From assembly GCA_964188305.1 (NCBI GenBank), contig OZ076895.1: 64,000 bases of DNA; one strand, 5' to 3'. The notes below the pieces were generated by a model. The model was not told the DNA's origin. It saw only the letters and a program-made list of their open reading frames with translations, and searched no databases. Positions 2,412-37,285 of the stretch are shown here, piece after piece. This DNA is from Podarcis bocagei (Eukaryota). The stretch's first letter is position 1. The number at the start of each line of letters is the position of its first letter. Both the position numbers and the translations under genes were made by a program.

Positions 2412-5400
2412 TTAATCAACAGAAAACACAAACTATTCCATATTTTTCCTACAGAATCAAACGTTGTTTGTACCAGCCAGACATTCCTTAAGAAAATAAA
2501 ATGGACGAATTGATGCAGATCATTTAGCTGAGGGGGAAACACCAAGGTTACAATGTGCCAATATCACTAATCACCTTCCTGTTTTATCTACAGCAGCAGA
2601 TTAAAGGGGGAAGGGATTCAGGGCCACTTTATACATTATACAGGTTTGAACAAAGCATTTTATCTTTAGTATCCTCATAAAATTGTCAACATTAAGGGGG
2701 AACAAATACATGCTGCCAGCTGTGTGTATCATACAGGTAGTATATACAAAAATTATCTGAACGGCAAGCAATTTCGTGCTGGGTGGATACTTGGTGCAAA
2801 CACTGATTTCCCTCTATGTGCAATAGCCTCAGATCTTTCATGAAATCTGATGGCACATTATTCATTTGGAAATCATCGGCAAACATTTCTGTAACAGCAA
2901 AGAACCCTGTGGCATCTTAAAGGCTGACGTTATGTTATTATGGCATAAGCTTTTATGGACCAAAGGCACAAAGTGTTATCCTGAGTGATGATGTGGGGTT
3001 GATTGTAAACACTGAGGTCGAAAAGAAAGGAAATGCCGAAAAGGTCAGATGGGGGAAGTTACCTTGTTATCTGTCTATCATTTCATTCCATTTATGAAGT
3101 GCTTCCTATAAAATTCTCTCAAAACAATTTAACCATTAAAACAAATTTCATACAACTCACAACCCCAGATCCAATACAGAGGTTGGAATTAAAAAATCTC
3201 CACTCAAAAGGCTTGTTGAAAAAAAGGAATGTCTTCAGCTGACACCACTCCAAAACTTATGTTCACTTAGGAACAGGCTGGTTCTTTCTCAAGCTCCTTC
3301 TCATCTCATTAGTTACTGTTTAGAATTAAATGAGCTAAGCTTAGTCCTATTCAGAGGGGGGGGGGAATTGTGACTGTTGTCTTTGGCTGAGATCACACAT
3401 TTGAACCTTGGAGTGCTTTTCTATCTTCAAGCAAATAAAAAAAAAGGAACTGTGTTTCAGTGCCCTTCCTCAGGGATCCAGAGAACAATGGAGGATGCAC
3501 CTTTGAAAGATGCAACCCAGCTCAAAGAGCAGTCAGCCAATTAATGTTAAGTGCTAGTAGCCATAAAGTCAGAATAAAGGAAGGAATGGGAGCTGGGGCA
3601 GGTTAGCTTTTCAAGCCATACACAATATTTTATTTTTGATCGGAAAAATCTTCCTCAGGTTCTTAGGACTATATTTTGCTGTGACTTTTCTGCGGTCATA
3701 GTGGGAACTTGTTTTGGTGGGGGGGTCTTTCCCCTGCCCCCAATTTAAACATTTAGTATTTGTAAGAAATATTGGCACTCCAAAACACCGGAAAAGGCAG
3801 CCTTAATAATACAGTAACTCCCTGAAACTCAAAAGAGATCTTCCAGGGCCTGGAACAATGAGCGGACGCAAGCGACCAGGTCAAATTGAACCCAGAGAAA
3901 AGGGGCAAATAAGTCTGACATCTGCCTCATCTTCTTTGACAAAAACTGTGTCAGCATCAGAGACTTCCCACAGCAATTCCTGCAGACTGCAGCACATGCG
4001 ACCTCAGTGATGTTTGCCCTGGCTAAAACTAATGTGCCCACATTGCATCTCCAGAAGGATAAGGAAAGATTATGGCCTTGGTGGGATCATTCGACACAGG
4101 CTGTGTCTACACACACACCATTTACTCTACACCTGGTATGCTCCCACCAGTAGTCTGGGAAGCAGTGTACATGTGATATTAGCCAAAAGCCATGTCTGTC
4201 CTTTGGTTTCCTATTAAATACTGTGTGTGGTGATGTGTGATTACCCAAGCCAGTTTCAATCCAAACGGAGAGAAAGAACAGCTGCAAATAAATCCCCCTT
4301 TAACTCTTTTTAAAATGGCTTTTTACGTAGGGTTCTGGGTGCAGTCTTCCTGAGGGGAAAAAATGGGTCCGTTTAATTAGTTCATCCTGCCACCTGTGTG
4401 CCTCATGCAGGATTGCATCAAGGTCACAATGGCTGTGCAGAAATCCACCGAGAAATCCCGCATGTACACTGTCCTTGGGGTGAGGAAATATACCCCAAGG
4501 CCCTGATTGGATGAAGGAAAATCTACACTTCTGTATCCAAGCCTTTTAGTACAAAAACTGGTCTCTGACCTGCATCGAAGGCCTTCGTTCAGATGAAGGA
4601 TCATGCACTGCAATAAGCTTGTGTCTGGATGAAGCTTGCTGGTGGGTTCCATAATTTAGGCAAGCTAGCTTTGTTGTTTTGGTCTGTACTCACATTCCCA
4701 AAGGTTTGCTTTACACTATTAGCCTTTCTTAGCCGTCTTTTATTGGTAAAGGGTTTGTAGTCTGTGCTTGGCCATATGCTACTGAGTAAAGACTCATTCA
4801 CACTTCCCTTTTTGCTTCATTTCTGAGCACAGGTCTGGGCTTTCCAGGTTGTGTCTGAGTGTCATCTTGGTGTGTTTTCCCCCCAGTACTTTCCCTGGGG
4901 AAACCCACATTTTACTGCTGAATCAGCACAAACAGCAATCAGGTTTTCCGAATCTTTCCAGGAAGAAAAGCACCAGAACAAAACAAAACAAAAAAAAGAC
5001 ACACACCTGAAAAACCCACACCTATGCCTAGAAGAGACCTAAGTTGTGTGCTTGGAGCTCAAAAGACAGTGAGTGGACTGTTTGGACTCTTTGTGAATCC
5101 CAAGAACATCCAGAAACAACCTGAGCTTCCCTTAGTTCAGGATTGGGAGACTACAGAGGTTCGGGCAGTGCTACAGGGCAGGTTGGTTTTCCCTGGGCTA
5201 TCTTACATAGTTTGCAGTACGTAATGAGAAAAGCAGCCCAGCATAAGCAAAATGCTTTACAATGACCTGGCAGTGTTTCAAGCCAGATAATGTATACACA
5301 ACCACAATCAATTTGTTATGCAGTGGGCTGGATGAGGGGGCAACCAAAACGGTGCCCTCCGGATGTTGTTGGACCACAACTCCCAACTACAACCAGAGGG

Positions 5401-5850
5401 CGCCATATTGGCTACCTCCTGCTGAGAGTGTCAGACTAGAACTGCAGAAACCTTGGTTCAAATTCCCACTTATCCATGAAGTTCACCAGGTGACTTCGGA
5501 TCAATTCTTCTCAGCCCAATTTTCCTCACAGGGTTGTGGTTTTTGTGTGTGGTTTTTTTGTAGAATACAAGGAAGCAAGAGACTAGTTTGTCACTCTGGG
5601 CAACTTGGAGAGAGAATAGGGTTAAAGTGAAGTAAACAAATAAATGAGACTCCAAAACAGAGGTCTCCAAAAGAGGGGGATGAGGAGGAGAGGAGAGGCC
5701 TTCTGTTATTACTCTGTAGTGCTACGGGACAAATGTCATCTCCATACTAGAGGAGTTGATGAGGATACACAGAATGCAGCTATAATCAGACTGTCTCTCA
5801 GCCTGCTCCAGTCTTGATCTGAACTGAAAGGAAGGGAAGTCTGGCAGAGT

Positions 5851-5992
5851 CAGTGCTTTTTCTTCTTCTCCTGGTGGTACTCATGGGTACGCAGTACCGG
5901 CACCTTCCCCCCAAATGTTAAAAGTGTGGCACATACTGTAACAACTTCCTGGTGAGTACCAGCACCTCTTTTTCTTTTTTAAAAAAGCACTG
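5851..5992. mobile_element. Short MITE with CAGTGCTTTTT terminal inverted repeats
   Basis: cagtgctttttc ... aaaaaagcactg; no clean TSD. Confidence 0.55.
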
Positions 5993-6692
5993 CAAAGAAG
6001 CAATGCCTTTGGGAGGATTAGAAAGGGAGGATTACAGAAGATGAGTCATGAGTAACGCAACTGGCAGATGATCAACATTACCATCTGAGGAGGAGGCTTG
6101 GAGCACACCAACTGGTGCACCTTCCAGCAAAGTTCAGTGTTGTCGCTGGAAGAGTGCAAACTTCCAGATCAGTTATGACTTCAGGAAAGGCAGCTGGGAA
6201 CATCTGGTGACAGGCCCATTTTGGAGGAGAAGCATGACCCCACCACTTCCAGCTGCTTTACAAACATTCAACCATACAAACCTTACTACCCAGGACATAT
6301 GGAGTCCCCATCTTGAAAATACAAAATGTAGTGAATAAGGAGGCATTGTTCATACTCCATATAAGATTGTCAGTGCACTGGTTTGTTCCAAACACAGAGC
6401 TGACTGCTTTGCTTTGTATTCAGATGGGTTTAGGCATGTATAGTCAAAAAGACACATGTCATAATAGAGACGTTCTCATGGGATTGGGGGTCAGCCAGGA
6501 CTTTTGTGCAAAACTCCCTCAACACAGCGAGAATTTTCTCAGCTGTAACAATTCCCCAAAGGAGAGACGGTAGAGATTCCTGATGGGGGTTTTTCCCCTC
6601 CCTGCATACGGATTTGTTCCATAACTGCTTATTCAACGTACAGAATTGCTGTGCGAAGAATAAAGGTATAAACAGCTCTCATTACTTGGCTA

Positions 6693-7013
<321 letters not shown>

Positions 7014-8343
7014 TCAGTTATATGCTCCCACCAACCCATCATAAGCCCCTTCCAAACCCCCCTAACACAGACAGGCACTGGTACATCAAAAGAAGGAATA
7101 ACTATTTTTCAGATAGCCCATTCGCAAGTTGCATCCAATGCCTGCTATCATCTCCAGCAAATGTCTGATGTGGCTGTTGTCTCATCCCCCAGGTGTGTCC
7201 TGGTGTTAGTCCCCAAACGGATCTTAAAGTCATGCTCTCTTCAGCTAGAGCAGTGGGTCAGATGCAGAACAAGAGTAAGGAACCAAAGGGGCAGAATGCA
7301 GCCCTCCAGATCTCTTTTTCTTGCTCTCTCCACAGGCCACACAACTCACTGCCCTGTGTCACAGCCTTCTCAGATGCTTTTACCGGAGTGGAATGTGTCT
7401 TCCTTGAATTATGCTAATAATAAGTTTTGCTTTCTTGCTTGGATGAATGGAGGAATGCAGCCTGCTGTACGAAAGTCAAGTGTTATATCCATTGCGCCAC
7501 CTACTTCTGCATCTTCCCTCACCTGCCCCTAGTATGTGGCCCCCGTAACACTGTTCAGGAGGCAATGTGGCCCTTGTGCTGAAAAGGTTCGCCAGGCCTG
7601 TTTAAGAAGAATCTTTTCCCTTCCACTCCTAGTTCTTCACATAGTCTTTGTGTAACAGGTTCACACTTCAAACGCACTTCTTAGAAACAGCTGGGTTTTC
7701 TGTACAAGCCAGACATCACACGGAGAGAAGGTGGAGATAAGGGCCTGCCCATGACATTTTGCTGCCCAAATCATCTATGCCCTCAGGATCTGAGATCAAC
7801 TGTGCACAATCCAAAGGGGTTTTTAAAAAGTTACAATATAGAACATTTCCCCCCAAGCTGGTCTCTCTAGTTAATTTGAACTGCCGTCAGTCCTAGCTGG
7901 CATGGGCAATGGTCAAGGATGATGGGGTTGTAGTCCAAAGCATATAGAGGGCAAGAGGTTGGGGAAGGCTGAAACAGTGGTTTCCCTACATATTTGGAGT
8001 ATGCCATACACGTTAATTTCAGTAATCTCAATGATATGTACAGTTTGTAAGGTAGATCAGTATTATTACAGAGAGAGAAAGACCCAAATAGATGCAGGAA
8101 ATAGTTTCAAAATAATATAATACATCTGGAGCAATGCATTTTAATAGAATGTCTTCTTAGGGGGCAATAGATTAACATTCTTCTTTTGCTTGCTCTGAAA
8201 GGCTATTCTAATGCTATCCTTGTGCGTGTAAATGGTCATTCTCTGTATTAAACACAAGGGCAGGATCGGAGGAGAAAAAAGAATTCTAAAACACTGACTT
8301 CTTGATACTTCCAGCTGGAGATGACCGTGCTGTGGATGGATGC

Positions 8344-8434
8344 CATGGCTGTCAACGTTTCCCTTTTTTTTAAGGGAAATTCCCTTATTCTGAATAGGAT
8401 TCCTCGCAAGAAAAGGGAAAAGTTGATAGCTATG
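8344..8434. mobile_element. About 90-bp hAT-type MITE, copy 1
   Basis: TIR catggctgtcaac / gttgatagctatg; 8-bp TSD atggatgc / attgatgc. Confidence 0.75.
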
Positions 8435-8580
8435 ATTGATGCTTCCATACAACCCAGATGGAGTAATATAGGAGAACCCTGTAGAAAACTAAAAGGGCAA
8501 TGAATATTACAAGGACATGAATACTACCAGGTAGCTGGCAAGATTCAGGGAGGGAGGGAGGGAGGGAGAAGTGTTATGAT

Positions 8581-8670
8581 CATAGCTGTCAACATTTCCC
8601 TTTTCTTGCAAGGAATCCTATTCAGAATAAGGGAATTTCCCTTAAAAAAAGAGAAACGTTGACAGATATG
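8581..8670. mobile_element. About 90-bp hAT-type MITE, copy 2 (inverted relative to copy 1)
   Basis: TIR catagctgtcaac / gttgacagatatg; perfect 8-bp TSD gttatgat. Confidence 0.8.
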
Positions 8671-10586
8671 GTTATGATTTGGTTTAGTTGGCTACCTATA
8701 TTTTGCTATGCATCTAAACAAACCAATAAAAACTATATTGTTTCCTCAAAGAATCCTGGGAACTGTTCAGGGTGCTGGGAACTGTAGCTCTTGGGGGGGT
8801 ACACTATACAGTTCTCCAGATTCTTTGGGGAAGCTGTAACTTAAAGTGGTATAAGCATGGTTTTAGATGCATCGTGTGGTTGTGACCTTAGTCTCCTACC
8901 TAGAAAATGACATTTCTCAGAAGGCTATTGTGAATGTGATAACAATCATAAAGCACTTTGAATACTGAAAGGCCCATTGCTGCCTAGACGAACCCTCTAC
9001 TATCTCCTCCTTTCAAGACTTCTCTCAACTCCAGTAAAGCAGGATTTATTCAGTATGTTTCTTAGATGCAGGAACAGATACCAATCCTCACTATAGAAGC
9101 TGCTCCAATAATAAGTATCCTCTGTGGAGAAAGAATCATCTGGAATTAATGTGCTTCGAGGCCGCCTATTCAGCCTGGAAATTCTCATTAAGCACAATCG
9201 TCTTCCTTTCTTTTCTTCCCACCTTCACTTCTTTCTTTCACTAACAAACAATTACAACAAGGGTTTTGCTTAGCTGGGTAGGGGGGCGGATGTTGTTAGC
9301 AAGCCGTGGTGGAACTGAATGGATAGTACACAGAAGGCTGAAATGAATCAGAGTTGGGGGTCACAGAGCCTAAACTTCTCACTCAGTGCTCTTGTAATCA
9401 CAGCATCTGTGGAAGATGGCTGCTCAGCAGCTGCTGCAATGCCTCCAGCAAAGGGGAACCCACCAATTGTCTGTTCCATGGCTGAGCAATCCTTACCATT
9501 AGGAAAGCTCTCCTCATGTTAACTAGAATCTGCTCCCTGGTAATCTCCCACCCATAGATTATAGTATCCTCTGGAAGAGCAACAGAGACCAAGCCTTCTT
9601 CAGCATGGCGGTCCTTCCGAGGTTTGAAGGCATCTCTCATGTCTCTTCCCCCCACCTTTATCTTCTCTTCTCCAGGATAAACATACCTGAGCCTTTCCAT
9701 CGTACCTCCTAGGAGTTGACTACTTCCATGCTGCCACTATTTCTGGGTGGGATTCAATTACATACCGTAAAATTCAGGTCACTCAATTAAAGCTGATTGC
9801 GAAGCTATAAGCAACAAGCCCATTTTCCCCAAACACTGGGCTTTTTGCAATAAAGAAACTGAGAGGGAAAATGCACTGGAAAGTGTGAGAGAACGTGGTG
9901 ATGCAAACATTGCCCAGCCTTCCCACCAACAAATCAGTGTATGCCACATGAAGCCACATGAAGTTACCACCTTGCTGAACCTAACCAGGTCTTTTTATGG
10001 CCAGTCCCTGGATGAAAGCCCTCATACATGCTACCTTGGGTCTCATGTTGAAAGAAAGATGGGGTACAAATCAAAGATTCAATGCACAGGTTCTTGCTAT
10101 CAGTATAAACTCATCCAAGAAACCATTAAGGACAGTCACAGAAGGCATACTGTGCTCTAGAAATGACCAGTCACTGATGCTGATTGCATCTTAGGGAGCA
10201 AGCAGAATTTCATGGCTAAAGCAACCTCAGAAATACAGTCTGGGTAAATAACAATAGCTGCCAACAATAGGCGTCCCCTACTCAGAAGCAGGGGGAGTCA
10301 TGGCTCATTTGCATGCATTAATTAAGCTGAATTGCGTACACATTTAAACATTTCCCCGTTTTCTTACACCAGCACAGCAGGGTAGAAGTGGGGGGGGGAG
10401 GGCTGGTTTGAAACTAGTCAAGTACAGCTGAAGCTGAGCAGAGATATGCAAAAGGTACTTGCAAAAAGGAACATTTAGGAGATCCATATCCATATAAAAT
10501 GCTAATAGAACAGCAGTGATCTATCCAGAGAGAAAAACTGCTGCCTCTGCTCACAAGACACAAATGCCCTCCCTCTCCTTACTCTG

Positions 10587-13189: not shown

Positions 13190-13257
13190 TATTTATAATT
13201 CATGGCAACGTCGACAAAATATTTCCTTCTCTGCCGATACACATTGTCCTTAAATCC
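13190..13257 (-). CDS. TPH2: Tryptophan hydroxylase 2, exon 5
   Basis: ctttag|..|gtgagt; GFKDNVYRQRRKYFVDVAMNYK(Y). Confidence 0.97.
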
Positions 13258-13944
13258 CTAAAGCAGATAAAAGAAAATGAATGCGTACCAAAGAGAATTA
13301 ACAACAGAAGGAAAAAATCAATAATCAAAGTGGATTCTAAAATAATGCTTATTAATATTGTAATTCATGCCATTTGTGGAACAGTTAGCAAACATAATGA
13401 CATTGTTACATGCCACTCCAATCTCTAAGTGGCAAGAGATTCCAGGGGTTCACGTTTCCTTTGGAAATGAGGCACAGCAGAGACTGTGGTGTCTTTATGA
13501 TATATGGTTTATGTACACATATATAAAACTTGCTTTGTTAATCACCTTTCTTTTGCTCTCCATGATGGCTCTTCATCAGGTGATTTCCTGAGCATGGAAA
13601 AAACTGGTTTGGCCTGTATTTTGACACTACTAAATTCAGTGTCTGGCAGCCCATCTTGATACTCCAAGCACTGATTAACTTCTAACAGTAAATGCAGGAA
13701 TTATTGGTGTCTTGCATCCACAAACTCATAACAAGATGTACAAGAATAGCCCTTTACTGCAACAAAACTTGACTAAGACTATGCACACATCACCAGTTTA
13801 AAATGCAGCTATATTGTTCTTTTTCTTATTTCAGATCAAAGCTGGTTCGGAGCGGGGAACACATCAAAATGCAGCACTATACTGTATTTCCTACTCAACA
13901 ACAGGATAGGTATGGATTATGTGTCTGCCTTTATTAGTACTTTG

Positions 13945-13945
<1 letters not shown>

Positions 13946-14003
<58 letters not shown>
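13946..14003. repeat. Compound (GT)n(GA)n microsatellite
   Basis: Seen directly. Confidence 0.9.
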
Positions 14004-14007
<4 letters not shown>

Positions 14008-14807
14008 AGTGCGATACAGAGAGCCTTATGAGTGTATTGTACATAGTCAGTGCACAAGCAGCACACATACAATGTAACATTCCATATACCCATGTAGTAC
14101 AGTATTTAATTGCTTTTTAAAAAAGCAAGTTTTAGAGGTGGCTACATGAAAACCTGTGGCTCTTTGGTAATCCCCTCTTAAGGGGCTAACGTGTGTCCAA
14201 ATTTCATGCACCTTTGCAAAAATACAAGAGAAGAAGGAGAAGGAGAAGCTATAGCTTCCCAATGCAAGTCAGTGGGATTTCTGCAGATTTGCTTTTACCG
14301 GATCACAATCCAGATCCAGGGCTCGGGGCAGTTCAAGATTGTCTCGAATCTAAATTGGTGTATCAGGGCCCAAACTGGCTTGGTGGAACAGCCGGGATTT
14401 CCTGCTCAGGGCCAGCCCAAGGCAAGTTGAAGCTTGAGGTGAAGGACAATGTAGTCCCCACCCTCCACAGACAAAATAGGATGGTCACATGCAAAAGGTG
14501 AAAGGGGGCCCTTAGCTATAATCTGTTAAGATACCTCTTGCACCAAAGGTGGAGGACCCCATTTCCAGGCCCGTGCAAAGCTTGTCTGAGGTGGGAAGTC
14601 TTGTTAGAATAAAGTTATAAAGTAGAAGACAATGACAAAGGAGGAGGAGGAGGAGGAGGAGGAAGCGGTCAGTACATGGTGGGGGAGGCCTCTGGCTGGC
14701 TTAGCCCTCCGAGGCCCAAGCAAGTGTACCCGGCTGACTTTCCTCTCTGCACGGGCCTCCCCAATCCTCATTTACACCTGAACCCTCTACGACAGAAACT
14801 GACTGTA

Positions 14808-15035
14808 CAGTTGTACTTTGGTTCTCGAACAGAATGCATTTCGGGAGGCTGTTCGACTCCCGGAATCATTTGAAAACCAAAGTGTGGCTTCCAATTGGCT
14901 GCAGGAAGCTCCAATCAAAAGCCACGGAAGTCGTGCCGGACGGTCAGCTTCCGAAAATTGTTTGAAAAGCAGAACACTCACTTCCGGGTTTTGATTGTTT
15001 GGGAGCCAAGGCATTCAGCTACCAATGTACAACTG
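14808..15035. mobile_element. Tc1/mariner (Tigger/pogo-like) MITE
   Basis: TA|cagttgtac ... gtacaactg|TA; related to the copy at 37035-37285. Confidence 0.7.
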
Positions 15036-15404
15036 TACTAGTAGTTAAATATTACTTCAACATTATTATCGGCACAGCACCCCCCCCCCCACTGTACTTC
15101 AAGGCAGGAAGCTAGCTTTGAAGGGCAGGGCAGGCCATACGGTCCACCTAACTCCAACCTTCCAGCATCTCGCCACCACACAAGAGTAACTGATCTGCTA
15201 GTGCAGGGATGGCGAGCCCCTCAGATGTTGTTGGACTTTAACTCCCACCATTCCTAACTATTGGCAGTGCTGGTTGTGGCTGATGGGAGTCATAGTGCAA
15301 CAGCATCTGGAGGGCTACAAAAAATCAAAGTGGAAGGAGTTTGCACTAGGCTTGTAAAAAGCAAGTCCATTTCTGAGTGCCCCAAGCTTCCATTAGGCCT
15401 GATC

Positions 15405-15562
15405 GACAGTGGAATTTGCTGCCAAGGAGTGTGGTGGAGTCTCCTTCTTTAAGCAGAGGCTTGACAACCATATGTCAGGAGTGCTCTGATGGTGTTTCCT
15501 GTTTGGCAGGGGGTTGGACTCGATGGCCCTTGTGGTCTCTTCCAACTCTATGATTCTATGAT
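15405..15562 (+). mobile_element. CR1 LINE 3' end fragment
   Basis: gggggttggactcgatggccc..ttccaactctatgattctatgat, the CR1 (ATTCTATG)n tail. Confidence 0.75.
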
Positions 15563-16139
15563 GCTGATTTTGATAATGATGCTCTAAATCATGAAGAGTT
15601 GGGATACCTTTGCCAGTCACAGAACAAAATCTATGGCATTTTCTTTCTTTCTTTTAATTCAATAAACACTGAATTGCCAGAACGGCTTCAGTTTTCCCAA
15701 GTTGTGTGTCAGGACCCCGTAACCACCCCCTCAAAGATGAATAAAACACCAGGACACAGAATATTTGGTTAATGTTATTGGGCAAATATTGGCCACAACT
15801 TTATTGGTTACAGAATGTGAGCAGTATTGGCTTAGGCATTGAATAGACCTGACTATATCTGACTCCTGCCCGTTGCTCAGGGAGTCCGGTAAGGGTAAAC
15901 CACTGGAAGGGGGAGCCCCGTTGATACAAACCAACTCAAACTCCCCCAGGGTTCCCACAGGGGTGGTGGCATGGCCCTAGCCCCGCCCCGGGCTTCGGAC
16001 AAGATCCACACCCCGGATTCCTTTAACAGAATATCCTTAAGCTTGGAGGGGCAGGTGATGACCACACCTCACCTCCCCATCATAAGGTCATCCAATGCCT
16101 AACCACCACAAGAGCCCAAAGACTCACCGCCAAATACCC

Positions 16140-16713
16140 TCACACCTGTAAGCAATCCTTCACGCCCTCTGCAATATCGGCCAACCAGATATCATTTCCC
16201 CAATCGGAAAGGTGTTCGCCATCATCTCAAAATAGGGCCATCTTGCTGTAAACAATGGTGGGGTGCGCAATCACCCGGCCACCCAGCATGTGCACTTTCT
16301 GTGTCAATGAACAATTCAAGCATTTTTGGATATGATCTGTTGCAGCTGGGCAATCACTGCCATGCCAGATGCGTCTTTCCAGAAGCTGCGACCAAATAAG
16401 AGTCATTTTGGGGAAGTTCAGAGCCATATAGTCCAAGTCCTTTTTGATATTTGAGAGCAAGTCCATGCCTTTCCGACTCAGCAAATCGTTTTCTCCCAAC
16501 TGCAAAACCAAAGCATTGGGAGAGCTCTGCGCATCAGCCTTGGTCCTCACAATTGGCAGCATCTCCTTCCATTGCATCCCACACCTTGATATCCAAGAAA
16601 TACGGATGTGCTCAGGAAAACCCAGGTGGCATCCCAGGCCACTGGCAACCGCCTATGCACAGGCCCAATGGATGATACTGTGTCCCGCGATCCAGATCTC
16701 AACACACTTTGCC
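16140..16713 (-). pseudogene. SGNH/GDSL hydrolase ORF of the Ngaro-like element (two in-frame stops)
   Basis: One frame: IWIAGHSIIHWA (block I), RCGMQW (II), LQLGENDL (III), DDGEHLSDWG (V); stops at 16653-16655 and 16227-16229. Confidence 0.82.
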
Positions 16714-16756
16714 CTTGAAACGTAAAGTAACAGAGCAGTGTAAGCCATAGGCCTGC

Positions 16757-17647
16757 TTAAAATAAGGAGCTGCCACTGCCACAGGTATAACCTTTGTACG
16801 CATTGGATCGCCACCGCCCCATGTCTTTTATCCTGTCCGCTGGAAACCCCAGTGGGCAGCCATTGTAGCGGCCCCAATCCTAAATGAGTGAGTGGCGTAT
16901 TCCCTAGCCAGAAGACCACACGCTTCGATAGCTCTCTGTATTACACAAGTAAACTGCTGTCTAGCTAGACAGGTCCCATCCTCATGCACGAGGAAAGGAC
17001 CTGGACCAGGGGGCCTAAGATAGAGAAACCTTTTAGTATCCTTCACTGGGCAAGGACCCCTTTGCATGGTCACTGGCAGACGGACCAGTGCACCCTTTCC
17101 TTTCTGGCTCTGTTTTCGAGCGACGAATACAAACTACCAACTCAGTGTCAGAAAGCTGAATATCGTTGAGCTGCAAGCCTCACGGTGAAGGACCTGGCTC
17201 ACCTTCTTGGACCACTTCCCCCACTCTTAGGGCGCCAAAAAAATGCAATGGAATAAGCAGCTGAAAACAATCGGGACTCATATTTGGACCAGCAAATTGA
17301 ATTGAATTTATTGCATATTCTACTAAGGGGATCAAATGTAATGAGCCTACGCCCATCCCCGCTTCGTGGTTGCAATCTACGCCAACCTTCAAGCGCCCTG
17401 CGCACCACAAACTCAACACATGGGTCCGTGAAGTAAAAAGGAGATGGCAGCCGCCTGGATTCTTAAGGTTTTTGCTGCACAACCAAGGTTGCGCAGATGA
17501 ACCAAGTATTGCAGCACATGGTCAATTGTTGGGGGGCGTGTGATGCCTAATACCCGATGACTGTGCACGATAGGCTAAGAAATTGGACCAAGCTCTTGTA
17601 TAGGGCCTAAGTGTAGAAGATACAACTGAAGCCAATACTCCCTGCAT
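16757..17647 (-). pseudogene. Tyrosine recombinase ORF of the Ngaro-like element (frameshifted)
   Basis: MQGVLASVVSSTLRPYTRAWSNF.., VRRALEGWRR, FFGALRVGEVV, CPVK, HSFRIGAATMAA, GRWRSNAYKGY. Confidence 0.85.
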
Positions 17648-18215
17648 CACGTCTCGTTTCCAAGGCTCCAGAGATGCTCCAGGAATGGTTCTGGAACTGC
17701 TGTGCCTCTGGGGCTAACAACCGGAAGCGGTCCATCTGAAATCGAGATAGCGCATCCGCAACATCATTATTAATTCCAGGAATGAATTTTGCTGAAAATA
17801 TAATGTTAAATTGGAGGCACCGCCAGACAAATGATCGAAGCAGAGCGGACACCCTTTCTGAGCGTGATGATTGCCCAGGCTGGTTGTCGGTCCAAAAGCA
17901 GACGCGGTGATCCCGGAATTCCTCAGTCCAAAGGTGAACAGCTACTAATATTGGGGGAAATCCAAGAAGGTCAAATCACGGATAATGGCCTTACCACACC
18001 AGCTAGCAGGCCATTGCTGTGCACAGCAGCGCCCCCTGAAGAATACACCAAAGCCCAAGGATCCTGCAGCATCTGATTGCACCTGAAAATCTGTGGAACA
18101 GAAGCCAAACCTGGAGATCTCCTTTTACTGATTTTGGGAGGCGCACCCTATGATGTGGTGATTGAAGTCTGGCAGATAGCCTTGCCAGCTGAGAGCAGAA
18201 AGGGCACCCCGGCTC
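17648..18215 (-). pseudogene. RT-connection / RNase H remnant of the Ngaro-like element
   Basis: PHHRVRLPKSVKGDLQVWL, SDAAGSLGFGVFF, CFWTDN, LLRSFVWRCLQFNIIFSAKFIPGINNDVADALSRFQMDRFRLLAPEA. Confidence 0.85.
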
Positions 18216-20261
18216 GCGCCTCCGCTTAAATGGTCCCAGCCACACACCCCCAGCCAGCCAGTGAATTGGCTGGCTGGTTGATGACAAGGCCAGGATCCTC
18301 CAGGCAACGCGGGACTTCGTCCCCTGCCCCCGGAGGAGAGTAGGTGGCCATGTGGCCCACTGCAACTCCTCCCCACAGTTAAGTGGAGCAGACTTCCCTT
18401 CCTGAAGAGAGAGAGAGAAAAGGCAAGGCAAGAGGTTAATTTCCCCTGGCTTTGGAGTCGTGGCTTTTGGCAGTACGTGGGCCTTGCAGTGTGTGTGTGA
18501 AATATGAGCTGAAACAGTGCTGCCGTATTAAAAACAGGGATGAAACACAAGGAACCTGCATGGAGGCTGCATTCCTGCTGAGCCTAAAGGATGCTATGAT
18601 TTCTACCTCATAATTATCTCCCAGAGTGTGAGCAGCTTTTCAATTGCCTTCTTTTTTCCCCTCCCACACCACTAGGAATGCTCATTTAATATCTATATTC
18701 TTTAAGTGAAATAGCAGTGGGCATGACTTTAAGTACTCGGGTGATTTTGGAGAGCAACACTTATATGCACCATTTAAAAAGGGGGGAAAGTAATCTAAAA
18801 GGTAAAAATGGGGAAGAAAGCAATGGGATAGTTTGTCATTTTTATTTATTTATTTTGTGATACCTTGTGTAGCTCTGTCATACTGAAAATACAGCATAAT
18901 AGCTGGCAGGGGTGGGGAGCAGGCAGAAAAAATCTATCCCAAGTCTTCTAAGCATCTCTTTTAAGCAGAAGTTGTAGACCATGAAAACGGCCTGAGTGGA
19001 TTTGCACCTTAATCTGAAATGCATTAGCTGAATATTTTTGGGATCAGTCTGTCATATCGAAGCTTGTCAGGAGGCAGGACAAATCAGAGTGGTGAATCAG
19101 TCCTCAGAAAGCAGAAAAGGGAAATGGCTTGTTTCCTGCTAGATCTGAGGAACTTGAGGTAGAGGATGGTAGATTGCAGCTGAACATTAGAAGCAACTTT
19201 GTAGGAATATGAACAGGGAAAGAATGGTAGAGCAGATGCCCAGAGTCAATTTCTGGCATCTCCAGGTAGGTTTGGGAATGACTCTGGTCTAAATCCCTCT
19301 CTAGAGAGCCACTGTCAGTCGGCATAGACCATAGATGAGGAACATGTAGTTCTCCAGATGTTGCTGGAATGCAGCTCCCATTATCCCTGGCTATTGGCCA
19401 TGCTGATGGGAGGCTGATTGGAGTTTCAGTCCAACAGCATCTGGAAGGTGATAGATTCTCCATCCCTGCAGTAAAAGATCATTCCCTGTGTTCCTTCTAA
19501 AAGCAGTTCAACAGCAGTACCATTTTTCTAGGATGCTGGTGGACTTCTTATTGCTGGAGAACTCCAAGCAGAAGCTTGACAGCGCTGGATTTCCAGTATC
19601 AAGCAGGGAATTGAATTAGATAGCCTACAACAAATTCTACGATATTGGCCCATGCAACAAACTGTCATTGCAAAGGGGCAGGTTCAAGGAAACTCCTGAA
19701 ATATCTTCCGTATCATATGTTGTCACAAAAGATCCCTGGATTTCTAAAGAAACCCACCTCCCTCTTGCATTCAGTGAAGGTTATTGCAATTAGCATCATG
19801 GTTATGAAATGAGCTGAAGGGATCAAGCATACTTAATAAAAAAAATGCATCCAGTTCTAGGAAAATACCACTGCCTATTATATTGTACATCTCATGGCTT
19901 GGCTTTGCCAACAAGACATTGTATCTCATCCTAAGCAATTTATCATTTCTACAACAGGAGTAAGTAAAAAACAACATGGGCTGCATAATGCACTGTATAA
20001 CAACTCTCTAATGTTTTGTTCCATTGTTATTTTGTATTTTCTTCCAATTATAGCTATGGAACAGCCTTGGGTGCCATTTGGTGCAAAGAAAGGATATAAA
20101 TTAAGCTACTTAAGTTATTTTGAATAATAATATTTAATAATAATTTGTTAATTATAGCTATAGTTCTAATTACTTGAAGAAGAAGAAAGTTCAGTTCTTT
20201 ATCATCAAATTGTCACAAATGTTTACTTGACCAACCTTGGCTGCATTTACTGAACACTTAC

Positions 20262-20362
20262 AGGGTGATCTGCATCCAGTTCAGAGCCGTACATTAGAAC
20301 TCTTTGGGAACATTTGTCTAATTCAGCAATCTTCCTGGGGAACCAAGGAACACAGTCAAGCT
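20262..20362 (-). CDS. TPH2: Tryptophan hydroxylase 2, exon 4
   Basis: ctccag|..|gtaagt; [34 protein letters not shown]. Confidence 0.97.
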
Positions 20363-20650: not shown

Positions 20651-21244
20651 CTGTAGACAGAACGAAAGATTGGTTCATTGACTCACTGAATTCATTTAGA
20701 AGAGAAGTGGTTTAATGGGTGTTCTGAACAGGATGTAGTTTAATGTGCATATAAAGGCATTTGAGTTAAGAAAATCCTTCATCTGTATTAAATTACTTAT
20801 TTGTTATTTTTAGTTCAATAAGTGTGCTGTAAAATTACGCCTGTATTAATTGCTCCATTTTATTAGATATCTGAAAACTGTAACTATTGTAGGATGATTA
20901 AAGGTGATTTACCATGGCCATTTCTTATAAAACAGGTGTTCACTGTAAAAAAAAATTATACTATTCAATGCCCAATTTATAGACAAGTTAAATTAATGGG
21001 CAAGAAATGAAATAGTGTGAAGATACAAGAAAAGTATTTATTTCAATCTACTTTAGCCTAACTGAACACTGTTACCCCACTTTGCTATCAGCAATAATCA
21101 AGATAACATGCCAAATAGCATTCATAAACATATTACAAAGAAACAGCCACATCAAGAGCATGGAAACAATATTCTGTTCTGCAACAAAGTAGTTGCTTTT
21201 TCACATATTCACTTCAAGTGCCATGTGAAAAAGTAACTAATGAT

Positions 21245-21901
21245 TGTCATGAACTGGCAGGGCAACGGGGAGGAGGAAGAGGATCCTGGCATGGGATGTA
21301 GCCAGGACTGGGACACACCACGGCAAGCAGGGGGTGGCAAAGGAAGTACTCACAGGCCGATGGAGGATGGTGAAGGAATGCAGTTCAATGCACAGGAACC
21401 AGAGCAGCAGGACCCATCACCAGAGACAGAGGACTCCCTACCCCACAAACAAGGTGGGTTCTGAGGCATAGGGAGTAGCAAGAGGGGTGCTATTGAAGGC
21501 TGAGCCAGGCAAGAGCCCACAGCCCAGCTCCCTAGTTGGCCAGGTGGAGCTTGCTAGCTCTGGAAGTAGGTGCCTGGTTCCTCAGCTGGAGTAGGCTTGG
21601 AACAGGTGAGGGTCACATGTCTCATCAAGCACAGGTGCTGCAATCTGCATGCAAAGTATGAAAGGGCAGCAGAGCTAAGGTGCTGTGTCTGCTCTACTGC
21701 CCATGTTGATGGACTTTGGCTTGGGACTGTGTCTGGGTTTGACGCTGGACTGTATCCTGACTGCTGGACTTCATATTTGGCCTACTTGGATTGACCCTGG
21801 ACTGTGTTCCCTGACCTTTGGACTTTGCTCGTGTGGCTTGACCCCCAGACTTTGGACTTGACATACTGACCTGCTGCCAGATAGGCTGGAGGTTCAGGGC
21901 A
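21245..21901 (+). mobile_element. Solo LTR (Gypsy-like), 657 bp
   Basis: TGTCATGA...CAGGGCA termini flanked by 5-bp TSD ATGAT (21240-21244 and 21902-21906); strand tentative. Confidence 0.7.
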
Positions 21902-22094: not shown

Positions 22095-22293
22095 TATTGG
22101 TAGGCAAACTAAAGCCCAGGGGCCGGATCTGGCCCAATCACCTTCTAAATCCTTTTGTTTAAAATGCATCTCTGGGTTATTTGTGGGGCTTGCCTGGTGT
22201 TTTTTCATGAGTAGAATGTGTGTTTTTATGTAAAATGCATCTCTGGGTTATTTGTGGGGCATAGGAATTCATTAATCCCCCCAATAGATAGAT

Positions 22294-22354
<61 letters not shown>

Positions 22355-22424
22355 TCTGCCCCCCCCCCACAAGGTCTGAGGGACAGTGAACCGGTCCCCT
22401 GCTGAAATACTTTGCTGACCCCTG
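22095..22424 (-). mobile_element. hAT-like non-autonomous element containing a (GATA)n array and an internal duplication
   Basis: Reverse-complement match to 11491-11742; (GATA)n at 22286-22353; taaaatgcatctctgggttatttgtgggg occurs twice. Confidence 0.7.
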
Positions 22425-36653: not shown

Positions 36654-37034
36654 CTAGCAGAATATTGAAGTTGCTGATGAATCAAGAACTTGAACATGAT
36701 GCCACAAGGGTAAGGTACTAAAAGGTTTTAACAGTCTCCCCAAACACTTATTTTTCTGGCAACTTTTTCTGGGGGGGGGGGAATAGTTTTCTAACTTCTT
36801 ATATATTTCAGTAAAATTGCCAGCTAATTAAACTATTATCTAGACAGAAGAACATAATAGCTTGCTTAATAACTATCTATAATTAATTTCATGCTACAGT
36901 CTGAAGATCTTGACAAGGGCAAACGGTAGAGCTATGTCCTGATAGCATCTGTCACCCTCAATGAATTTCAGATATTTTGGGTGGATCCTTCAGATCTTCA
37001 TGCCTCACTGAAAATCAGGATCAGAAAACCAGTA

Positions 37035-37285
37035 CAGTCATACCTTGGAAGTCAAACAGAATCAGTTCCAGAAGTTCATTCGACTTCCAAAACATTCAGA
37101 AACTAAATCACAGCTTCTGATCGGCTGCAGGAAGCTCTTGCAGCCAATCAGAAGCCGCAGAAGCCCCATCGGACGTTTGGGTTCCAAAAGAACGTTCGCA
37201 AACCAGAACAATGACTTCCAGGTTTGCAACGCTTGGGAGCCAAAACATCCAGGTTCCAGGACTTTTGGGATCCAAGGTACGACTG
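37035..37285. mobile_element. Tc1/mariner (Tigger-like) MITE
   Basis: TA|cagtcataccttgga ... tccaaggtacgactg|TA. Confidence 0.8.

Follow-up and report, generated by a model that had tools for sequence, protein, structure and literature searches.

Tyrosine recombinase retrotransposon remnants in a TPH2 intron

The DNA analyzed in this study (hereafter the window) is a 64,000-nucleotide stretch of the Podarcis bocagei genome (GenBank assembly GCA_964188305.1, contig OZ076895.1). Six minus-strand tryptophan hydroxylase exons were found in the window, and scores for TPH2 exceeded those for TPH1 (135.8 versus 123 bits for the exon in piece 6693–7013 and 36.2 versus 34 bits for a 22-aa exon), in agreement with a first-pass annotation that had placed the locus inside TPH2. 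One 7-kb intron of this gene (13258–20261, minus strand) has canonical splice signals at both ends; the upstream exon ends in GATCACCCT, followed by GTAAGT, at 20262, and the downstream exon begins at 13257, after CTTTAG. Within this intron, and in sense orientation, lies what we identify with high confidence as a dead fragment, approximately 2.5 kb long, of a Ngaro-type tyrosine recombinase (YR) retrotransposon, which is ancestral to several related species and is decaying neutrally. The fragment runs from 18212 to 15702 on the minus strand and contains, in this order, the RNase H (RH) end of a reverse transcriptase (RT)/RH open reading frame (ORF), a YR ORF, an SGNH esterase ORF, and one B-type terminal repeat. 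Its anatomy was established by frameshift-aware protein-to-DNA alignment and by tblastn against intact relatives, which are described below.

The RH part (17656–18212, minus strand) corresponds to residues 412–620 of the 621-aa RT/RH ORF of an intact Podarcis muralis element (locus L003; tblastn E value, 9e-48). In-frame identity was 130/184, and the frame is broken by three frameshifts, near 18092, 17953, and 17696. The motifs SDAAGS (18059–18076), FWTDNQ (17880–17897), and NDVADALSR (17742–17768) are readable on the minus strand. The window copy has lost 18 nt at 17875 that are still present in two related species, and this loss coincides exactly with a 6-codon gap in the RH alignment. The YR remnant (16787–17686, minus strand) is spread over three frames and matches an intact YR ORF on a contig of the Logan collection (L001) with an identity of 177/297 and five frameshifts, near 17554, 17436, 17237, 17107, and 16836. 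The R, HxxR, and Y motifs of the recombinase are present, and the catalytic region includes the minus-strand sequences ALRVGE (17216–17236), HSFRIGAAT (16864–16890), and GRWRSNAYKGY (16787–16819). The homologous intact YR ORF was recognized by the Pfam models Phage_integrase (29.1 bits; cut-off, 27.1) and SAM_4 (27.4 bits; cut-off, 27).

The SGNH/GDSL esterase ORF (16143–16742, minus strand) keeps the full length of its family in one frame. It aligns with residues 2–203 of the 203-aa lizard protein P0019 (E value, 2e-58), for which no encoding contig is on record, with 95 of 199 residues identical, no frameshifts, and two in-frame stops, TAG at 16653–16655 and TGA at 16227–16229. Blocks I (GxS; GHS at 16674–16691), II (G; 16569–16589), III (GxND; GEND at 16482–16499), and V (DxxH; DGEH at 16206–16226) are all readable in order. 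A profile built from 47 relatives matched three consecutive pieces of this ORF colinearly (E values of 2.5e-4, 2.8e-43, and 1.2e-6) and found no other match among the 2894 six-frame pieces of the window. The minus-strand order of RH, YR, and SGNH reported by the first-pass annotation was reproduced by both alignment methods. Its catalytic motifs of the recombinase and hydrolase were recovered by translating the minus strand from stop to stop between 15.7 and 18.3 kb, and its distribution of lesions also held, with two stops and no frameshift in the hydrolase and frameshifts in both RH and YR. Near the start of the SGNH ORF, a pyrimidine-rich tract (16714–16740, minus strand) ends in AG (16715–16714) at the position of the RefSeq splice acceptor of intact lizard and frog relatives; it is weaker than in those relatives and is a relic with neither an upstream donor nor a gag exon.

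The B-type repeat (15702–16108, minus strand) is equivalent to the first B repeat (B1) of the P. muralis element and is colinear with it to the last base. It contains AATAAA at 15805–15800, conserved with the P. muralis element, and the AATAAAGTTGTGGCCAA motif in the B repeat (L003:8977–8983; window 15800–15805) is kept despite approximately 50% divergence elsewhere in B; this motif is a likely polyadenylation signal of the element. We also observed that part of the repeat (15769–16102) had a summed contig depth of approximately 11,000 to 40,000 in run X3, compared with 10 to 100 for the adjoining coding part. This difference of hundreds to thousands of times indicates that B-like sequence is far commoner in these genomes than the ORFs of the family, and it may represent solo repeats or a non-autonomous family.

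The 5' break at 18212 is sharp, as homology to the relatives starts abruptly there. Mid- to high-copy repeats (18274–18440 and 19109–19442) lie directly upstream of it. The 3' limit was placed near 15702, where colinearity with the P. muralis B1 repeat ends. The first-pass span of 15706–18355 therefore agreed with ours at the 3' end, but positions 18213–18355 are not recognizably part of the element. No A2 or B2 repeat was recognizable after the B repeat, and neither an RT core nor a credible gag match was found anywhere in the 64-kb window; a region at 21243–21670 gave a weak gag-like match (E value, 0.085) and was not counted as belonging to the element. What is left is the RH end, the YR and SGNH ORFs, and the first B repeat; gag, the RT core, and the repeats A1, A2, and B2 are missing, so that the window copy represents approximately 2.5 kb of an element of approximately 7.5 kb.

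Intact relatives and the assignment to Ngaro

To a word-based protein search, a 141-aa piece of the SGNH ORF returned only three short Logan proteins and led to the 205-aa protein P0001, with which it shares 49% identity. On L001, which encodes P0001, the intact YR ORF overlaps the SGNH ORF and ends 10 nt into it. Used as the query of an exhaustive HMMER search, P0001 returned 1544 representative clusters at an E value of ≤0.001, 802 of them at ≤1e-10. The nearest named relatives were "uncharacterized" proteins of the lacertids P. muralis, Podarcis raffonei, Zootoca vivipara, and Lacerta agilis, and further relatives came from a gecko, caecilians, frogs, a newt, fish, and molluscs.

Intact copies were found in P. 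muralis, where the 207-aa protein P0008 is encoded at two loci of one chromosome (L003 and L004), 99.8% identical over 7534 bp (L003:2361–9894). The terminal repeats of L003 are split and direct, in the arrangement A1...B1-A2...B2; A1 (2365–2572) and A2 (9079–9286) are 100% identical over 208 bp, and B1 (8653–9080) and B2 (9467–9894) are 100% identical over 428 bp. Between the outer repeats lie a gag-like ORF (3935–5518) with a weak CCCH zinc-finger match, an RT/RH ORF (5262–7124) with the RVT_1 domain (E value, 1.5e-13), the YR ORF (7022–8008), and the SGNH ORF (7962–8621). No methyltransferase was found in L003, and Pfam detected no such domain in its 621-aa RT/RH ORF. In Xenopus tropicalis, locus L005 matches this order of ORFs and this repeat arrangement (A1...B1-A2...B2); its RT/RH ORF, 47% identical to that of the lizard, likewise carries RVT_1. 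A Mytilus locus (L006) contains RT/RH, YR, and SGNH with terminal direct repeats. Four independent loci, all intact and drawn from lizard, frog, and mussel, thus have the SGNH ORF after YR and inside the terminal repeats; in lizard and frog the two ORFs overlap. The first-pass annotation had staked its proposal on a linkage of the hydrolase to YR in other genomic copies, and we observed this linkage in L001, L003/L004, L005, and L006.

The architecture of these relatives supports the classification of the window copy as Ngaro-type, as the first-pass annotation had it; L003, L005, and L006 share the RH-YR-SGNH order, and the split direct repeats and lack of a methyltransferase in all three uphold the assignment. 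We also considered a DIRS1-like or PAT-like element. RT/RH and YR are common to all YR retrotransposons, and the first-pass annotation labeled the RNase H after a model of DIRS1 type, both of which are compatible with such an origin. However, the RH part, ending at 17656, runs directly into YR, which starts at 17686 to 17754, so that there is no room for a DIRS1-like methyltransferase domain between them; the intact relatives have A1...B1-A2...B2 repeats rather than inverted terminal repeats with an internal complementary region; and an SGNH ORF after YR has been described for Ngaro-like families (PMC9210276). A DIRS1-like or PAT-like origin is accordingly very improbable.

The architecture itself is not new. 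Ngaro-like YR retrotransposons with a hydrolase ORF were reportedly described by Goodwin and Poulter in 2004. Ngaro-like elements of Xenopus carry an SGNH hydrolase ORF of unknown function after YR (PMC9210276; PMC6681497), and in the open literature searched, the SGNH ORF is described for amphibians, not for lizards. The first-pass view of this locus as the most unusual coding cassette in the window was therefore not sustained. Lacertid genomes contain intact Ngaro elements whose conserved esterase ORFs carry no annotation beyond "uncharacterized," "mucin-like," or "zinc finger protein-like."

Age and decay of the window copy

Parts of the stretch were found in public sequencing runs of eleven organisms. 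For four of these, all related species, contigs aligned at a likeness of at least 85% span the fragment and its flanks without a break, one of them, 5.2 kb long, reaching from 16035 to beyond 19600. The copy is therefore orthologous in at least four related species, and the insertion predates them. The orthologous copies carry lesions of their own; the SGNH ORF has lost 1 nt at 16370 in two related species, and YR has lost 93 nt at 17289–17381 in two. Among the ten best-supported substitutions listed in the SGNH frame, a small sample, seven are nonsynonymous and three synonymous. The lineage-specific lesions and this 7:3 ratio point to neutral decay and not to domestication.

Selection on the SGNH ORF nevertheless deserves consideration, as the ORF could have been domesticated by the host, or used through TPH2 transcripts, while the rest of the element decays. 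It has no frameshift against eight in RH and YR, its four catalytic blocks are still readable, and the fragment keeps an acceptor-like AG in sense orientation within TPH2. Yet one of the two in-frame stops falls between blocks I and II, the deletion at 16370 affects related species, and the substitution ratio is that expected without constraint. The skew of the frameshifts has a chance of approximately 0.06 and was noticed post hoc, and no RNA run was among the public runs found to carry the sequence, which is weak evidence. Taken together, these observations make domestication highly unlikely; with two stops and a post hoc comparison, the better preservation of the hydrolase frame does not count as evidence that selection has acted.

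Several points weigh against our interpretation of the locus and of its family. All eight frameshifts spare the 600 nt of SGNH and lie in the remaining 1426 of the 2026 nt, with the probability given above, and SGNH may conceivably have passed through a period of constraint. The 3' limit is set only by the loss of similarity to a relative that is approximately 50% diverged, and a degenerate A2 repeat may lie beyond 15702. Pfam does not recognize the window's own broken pieces; in ten stop-to-stop pieces it gave a single weak match, to Phage_int_SAM_4 (E value, 0.068), and with Pfam nearly silent on the broken frames, the domain calls rest on the intact relatives. The profile check proposed in the first-pass annotation was all but negative with Pfam on the window pieces and positive with the family profile and, for Lipase_GDSL and Phage_integrase, in the relatives. 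The Ngaro call was made on architecture, the one link by sequence being the 47% RT/RH identity to the Xenopus element, whose layout is the one published as Ngaro-like. For the family, the splice between the N-terminal part of gag (gag-N) and SGNH discussed below comes from computed gene models, and the esterase role is assigned by homology only, activity having been measured just for the LINE homologue (PMC3905857).

We retain the reading of a dead, neutrally decaying Ngaro-type fragment. The locus is an ordinary relic of a known kind of element, harmless in its intron, and matters little in itself; it should be masked as a transposon fragment and not annotated as a gene.

Other repeats are scattered around the fragment. 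A SINE-like (short interspersed nuclear element-like) insertion of 160 bp at 15402–15561, with a summed contig depth of up to approximately 1e6, is not part of the Ngaro element. Three of the four related species do not have it at the orthologous position, their contigs joining 15399/15401 directly to 15559/15562, and it is thus young and lineage-specific. Read joints that skip from 15561 to 19246 or 19325 were rejected as empty sites, as they have only 20 to 25 nt on one side, in high-copy repeats. Copies of a palindromic high-copy repeat, 77% alike, lie at 15222–15314, alternatively delimited as 15224–15307, and at 19355–19448. This 94-nt pair was tried as the A1/A2 repeats of the element and rejected, since the two match in both orientations, are very high-copy in all four runs, and resemble Rfam mir-5408 on either strand (45.9 and 37.3 bits, below the gathering score of 90). 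The last result indicates a palindromic dispersed repeat, probably MITE-like (miniature inverted-repeat transposable element-like). Further dispersed repeats at 14805–15024 and 37032–37258 are 69% alike over 229 nt, the first being high-copy in all four runs, and microsatellites occur near 13950–14010, (CA)n/(GA)n, and at 22286–22362, (GATA)n.

The SGNH protein of live elements and known systems

Across the 47 relatives, H184 never varies, and S29, G62, G90, N92, D93, and D181 almost never do. Two of the SGNH relatives exceeded the Pfam Lipase_GDSL cut-off of 23.6 bits (P0001, 23.7; P0096, 24.1). The AlphaFold2 model of P0008 has an SGNH fold (mean predicted local distance difference test score, 94.7), and a structure search with it gave 167 matches in the PDB at an E value of ≤0.001; among the matches listed, all were SGNH enzymes. 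The best solved match in a sequence-profile comparison was 4C1B, the esterase of the ORF1 protein (ORF1p) of ZfL2-1, a zebrafish L2 long interspersed nuclear element (LINE), with an E value of 1.1e-12 compared with 1.7e-6 for the next. The ZfL2-1 esterase is active and binds acidic phospholipids and liposomes, and its authors proposed that it targets the ribonucleoprotein to membranes; Ngaro and DIRS elements are not mentioned (PMC3905857). We found no paper linking the Ngaro SGNH protein to the LINE ORF1p esterase in the open literature, the coverage of which does not extend to the 2004 description of Ngaro. The intact Ser/Gly/Asn/Asp-His set and the likeness to LINE ORF1p suggest that the SGNH protein of live members most likely assists the element's ribonucleoprotein, either as an esterase or by binding membrane lipids.

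Gene models give a second lead. In RefSeq proteins of approximately 414 to 452 aa from lizards and frogs, the SGNH ORF is preceded by the first 224 to 254 residues of the gag-like ORF. The gag-derived N-terminal part is rich in serine, proline, and arginine, contains a RKRRHRRSSRRRAKRRR stretch, and is basic and disordered. In the P. muralis model (L003), exon 1 ends at 4667 and exon 2 starts at 8050, separated by an intron of 3382 nt, GTACGT...TTTACCCAG (acceptor CCCAG), and joining the two gives an open frame of 414 codons. The X. tropicalis exons (L005; 6001–6763 and 10123–10718), separated by an intron of 3359 nt, GTGAGT...TTTTTTACCCCCAG (acceptor CCCAG), give the RefSeq protein exactly. 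Two independent intact loci thereby lend support to the splice.

In many public gene models, the SGNH ORF of Ngaro is merged with a host gene, for example PRP39 in Bombina or a CSDE1-like gene in fish, and lizard models with the ORF are named zinc finger protein 638-like or 318-like; one model contains up to six SGNH stretches. The fused models noted (proteins P0011, P0032, P0082, P0096, P0102, and P0004) are probably annotation chimeras, and some could be real exonizations.

We put forward, tentatively and at slightly less than even odds, that the Ngaro esterase is produced from a spliced subgenomic mRNA joining gag-N to SGNH, with canonical introns of about 3.4 kb and a near-identical acceptor from frog to lizard, and that it is a true homologue of the L2/CR1 LINE ORF1p esterase. 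If this is true, two mechanistically unrelated classes of retrotransposon share a membrane- or lipid-directed step. As a minor corollary, the window copy, with its acceptor in sense orientation in the TPH2 intron, could act as a cryptic exon. In a live element, as established knowledge of DIRS and Ngaro elements would predict, the RNA would be reverse-transcribed, the B1-A2 junction would template the B2-A1 joint to complete a closed or concatenated DNA copy, and the tyrosine recombinase would insert this copy without target-site duplications. The esterase would be translated from the spliced mRNA as the basic, disordered product of the first 224 to 254 or so gag-like codons attached to the SGNH ORF, as in the gene models. 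None of these steps can operate in the window copy. That the ORF is instead a fragment of an unrelated LINE (L2/CR1 ORF1p) adjoining a YR element by chance, as its closest solved relative might suggest, can practically be dismissed, because SGNH follows YR within terminal repeats in four independent intact loci and no LINE RT or endonuclease lies beside it in the window. The element is of a known kind, and the family-level leads, the LINE-like esterase and the conserved gag-N/SGNH splice, are the only part worth following; both are hypotheses that can be tested on natural intact copies.

The closest known systems are the Ngaro-like elements with a hydrolase ORF, such as Xenopus DIRS-53_XT and DIRS-54_XT (PMC9210276). 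They agree with the family in the order of gag-like, RT/RH, YR, and SGNH ORFs and, as judged from the intact relatives, in the overlap of the ORFs, the split direct repeats, and the lack of a methyltransferase. The window copy differs in that only the RH-YR-SGNH-B1 part is left and is inactivated, and its lizard lineage shares approximately 46 to 71% protein identity with the intact P. muralis family. DIRS1-like elements resemble these in the broad type of their RT/RH and in having a YR in place of an integrase, but their inverted terminal repeats, internal complementary region, and usual methyltransferase were seen neither here nor in the intact relatives.

Among solved proteins, the catalytic subunits of platelet-activating factor acetylhydrolase Ib, bacterial TesA/GDSL acylhydrolases, and sialate O-acetylesterases are alike in fold and catalytic blocks (Foldseek probability, 1.00; template modeling score, 0.6 to 0.7; profile E values, 1e-3 to 2e-6). 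However, these cellular enzymes are only 12 to 20% identical and are not parts of mobile elements. ZfL2-1 ORF1p shares the SGNH fold and the Ser/Asp/His and Gly/Asn residues, and its match extends over profile positions 15–197; it ranked only 40th in the structure search, probably because the crystal is domain-swapped. Both it and the Ngaro SGNH protein are borne by retrotransposons and are joined to an N-terminal non-enzymatic part. The class of element differs, ZfL2-1 being a target-primed LINE and Ngaro a YR retrotransposon. In ZfL2-1, the esterase domain follows a coiled coil within ORF1p, whereas in Ngaro it occupies a separate last ORF that, according to the gene models, is spliced to a basic, disordered gag N terminus.

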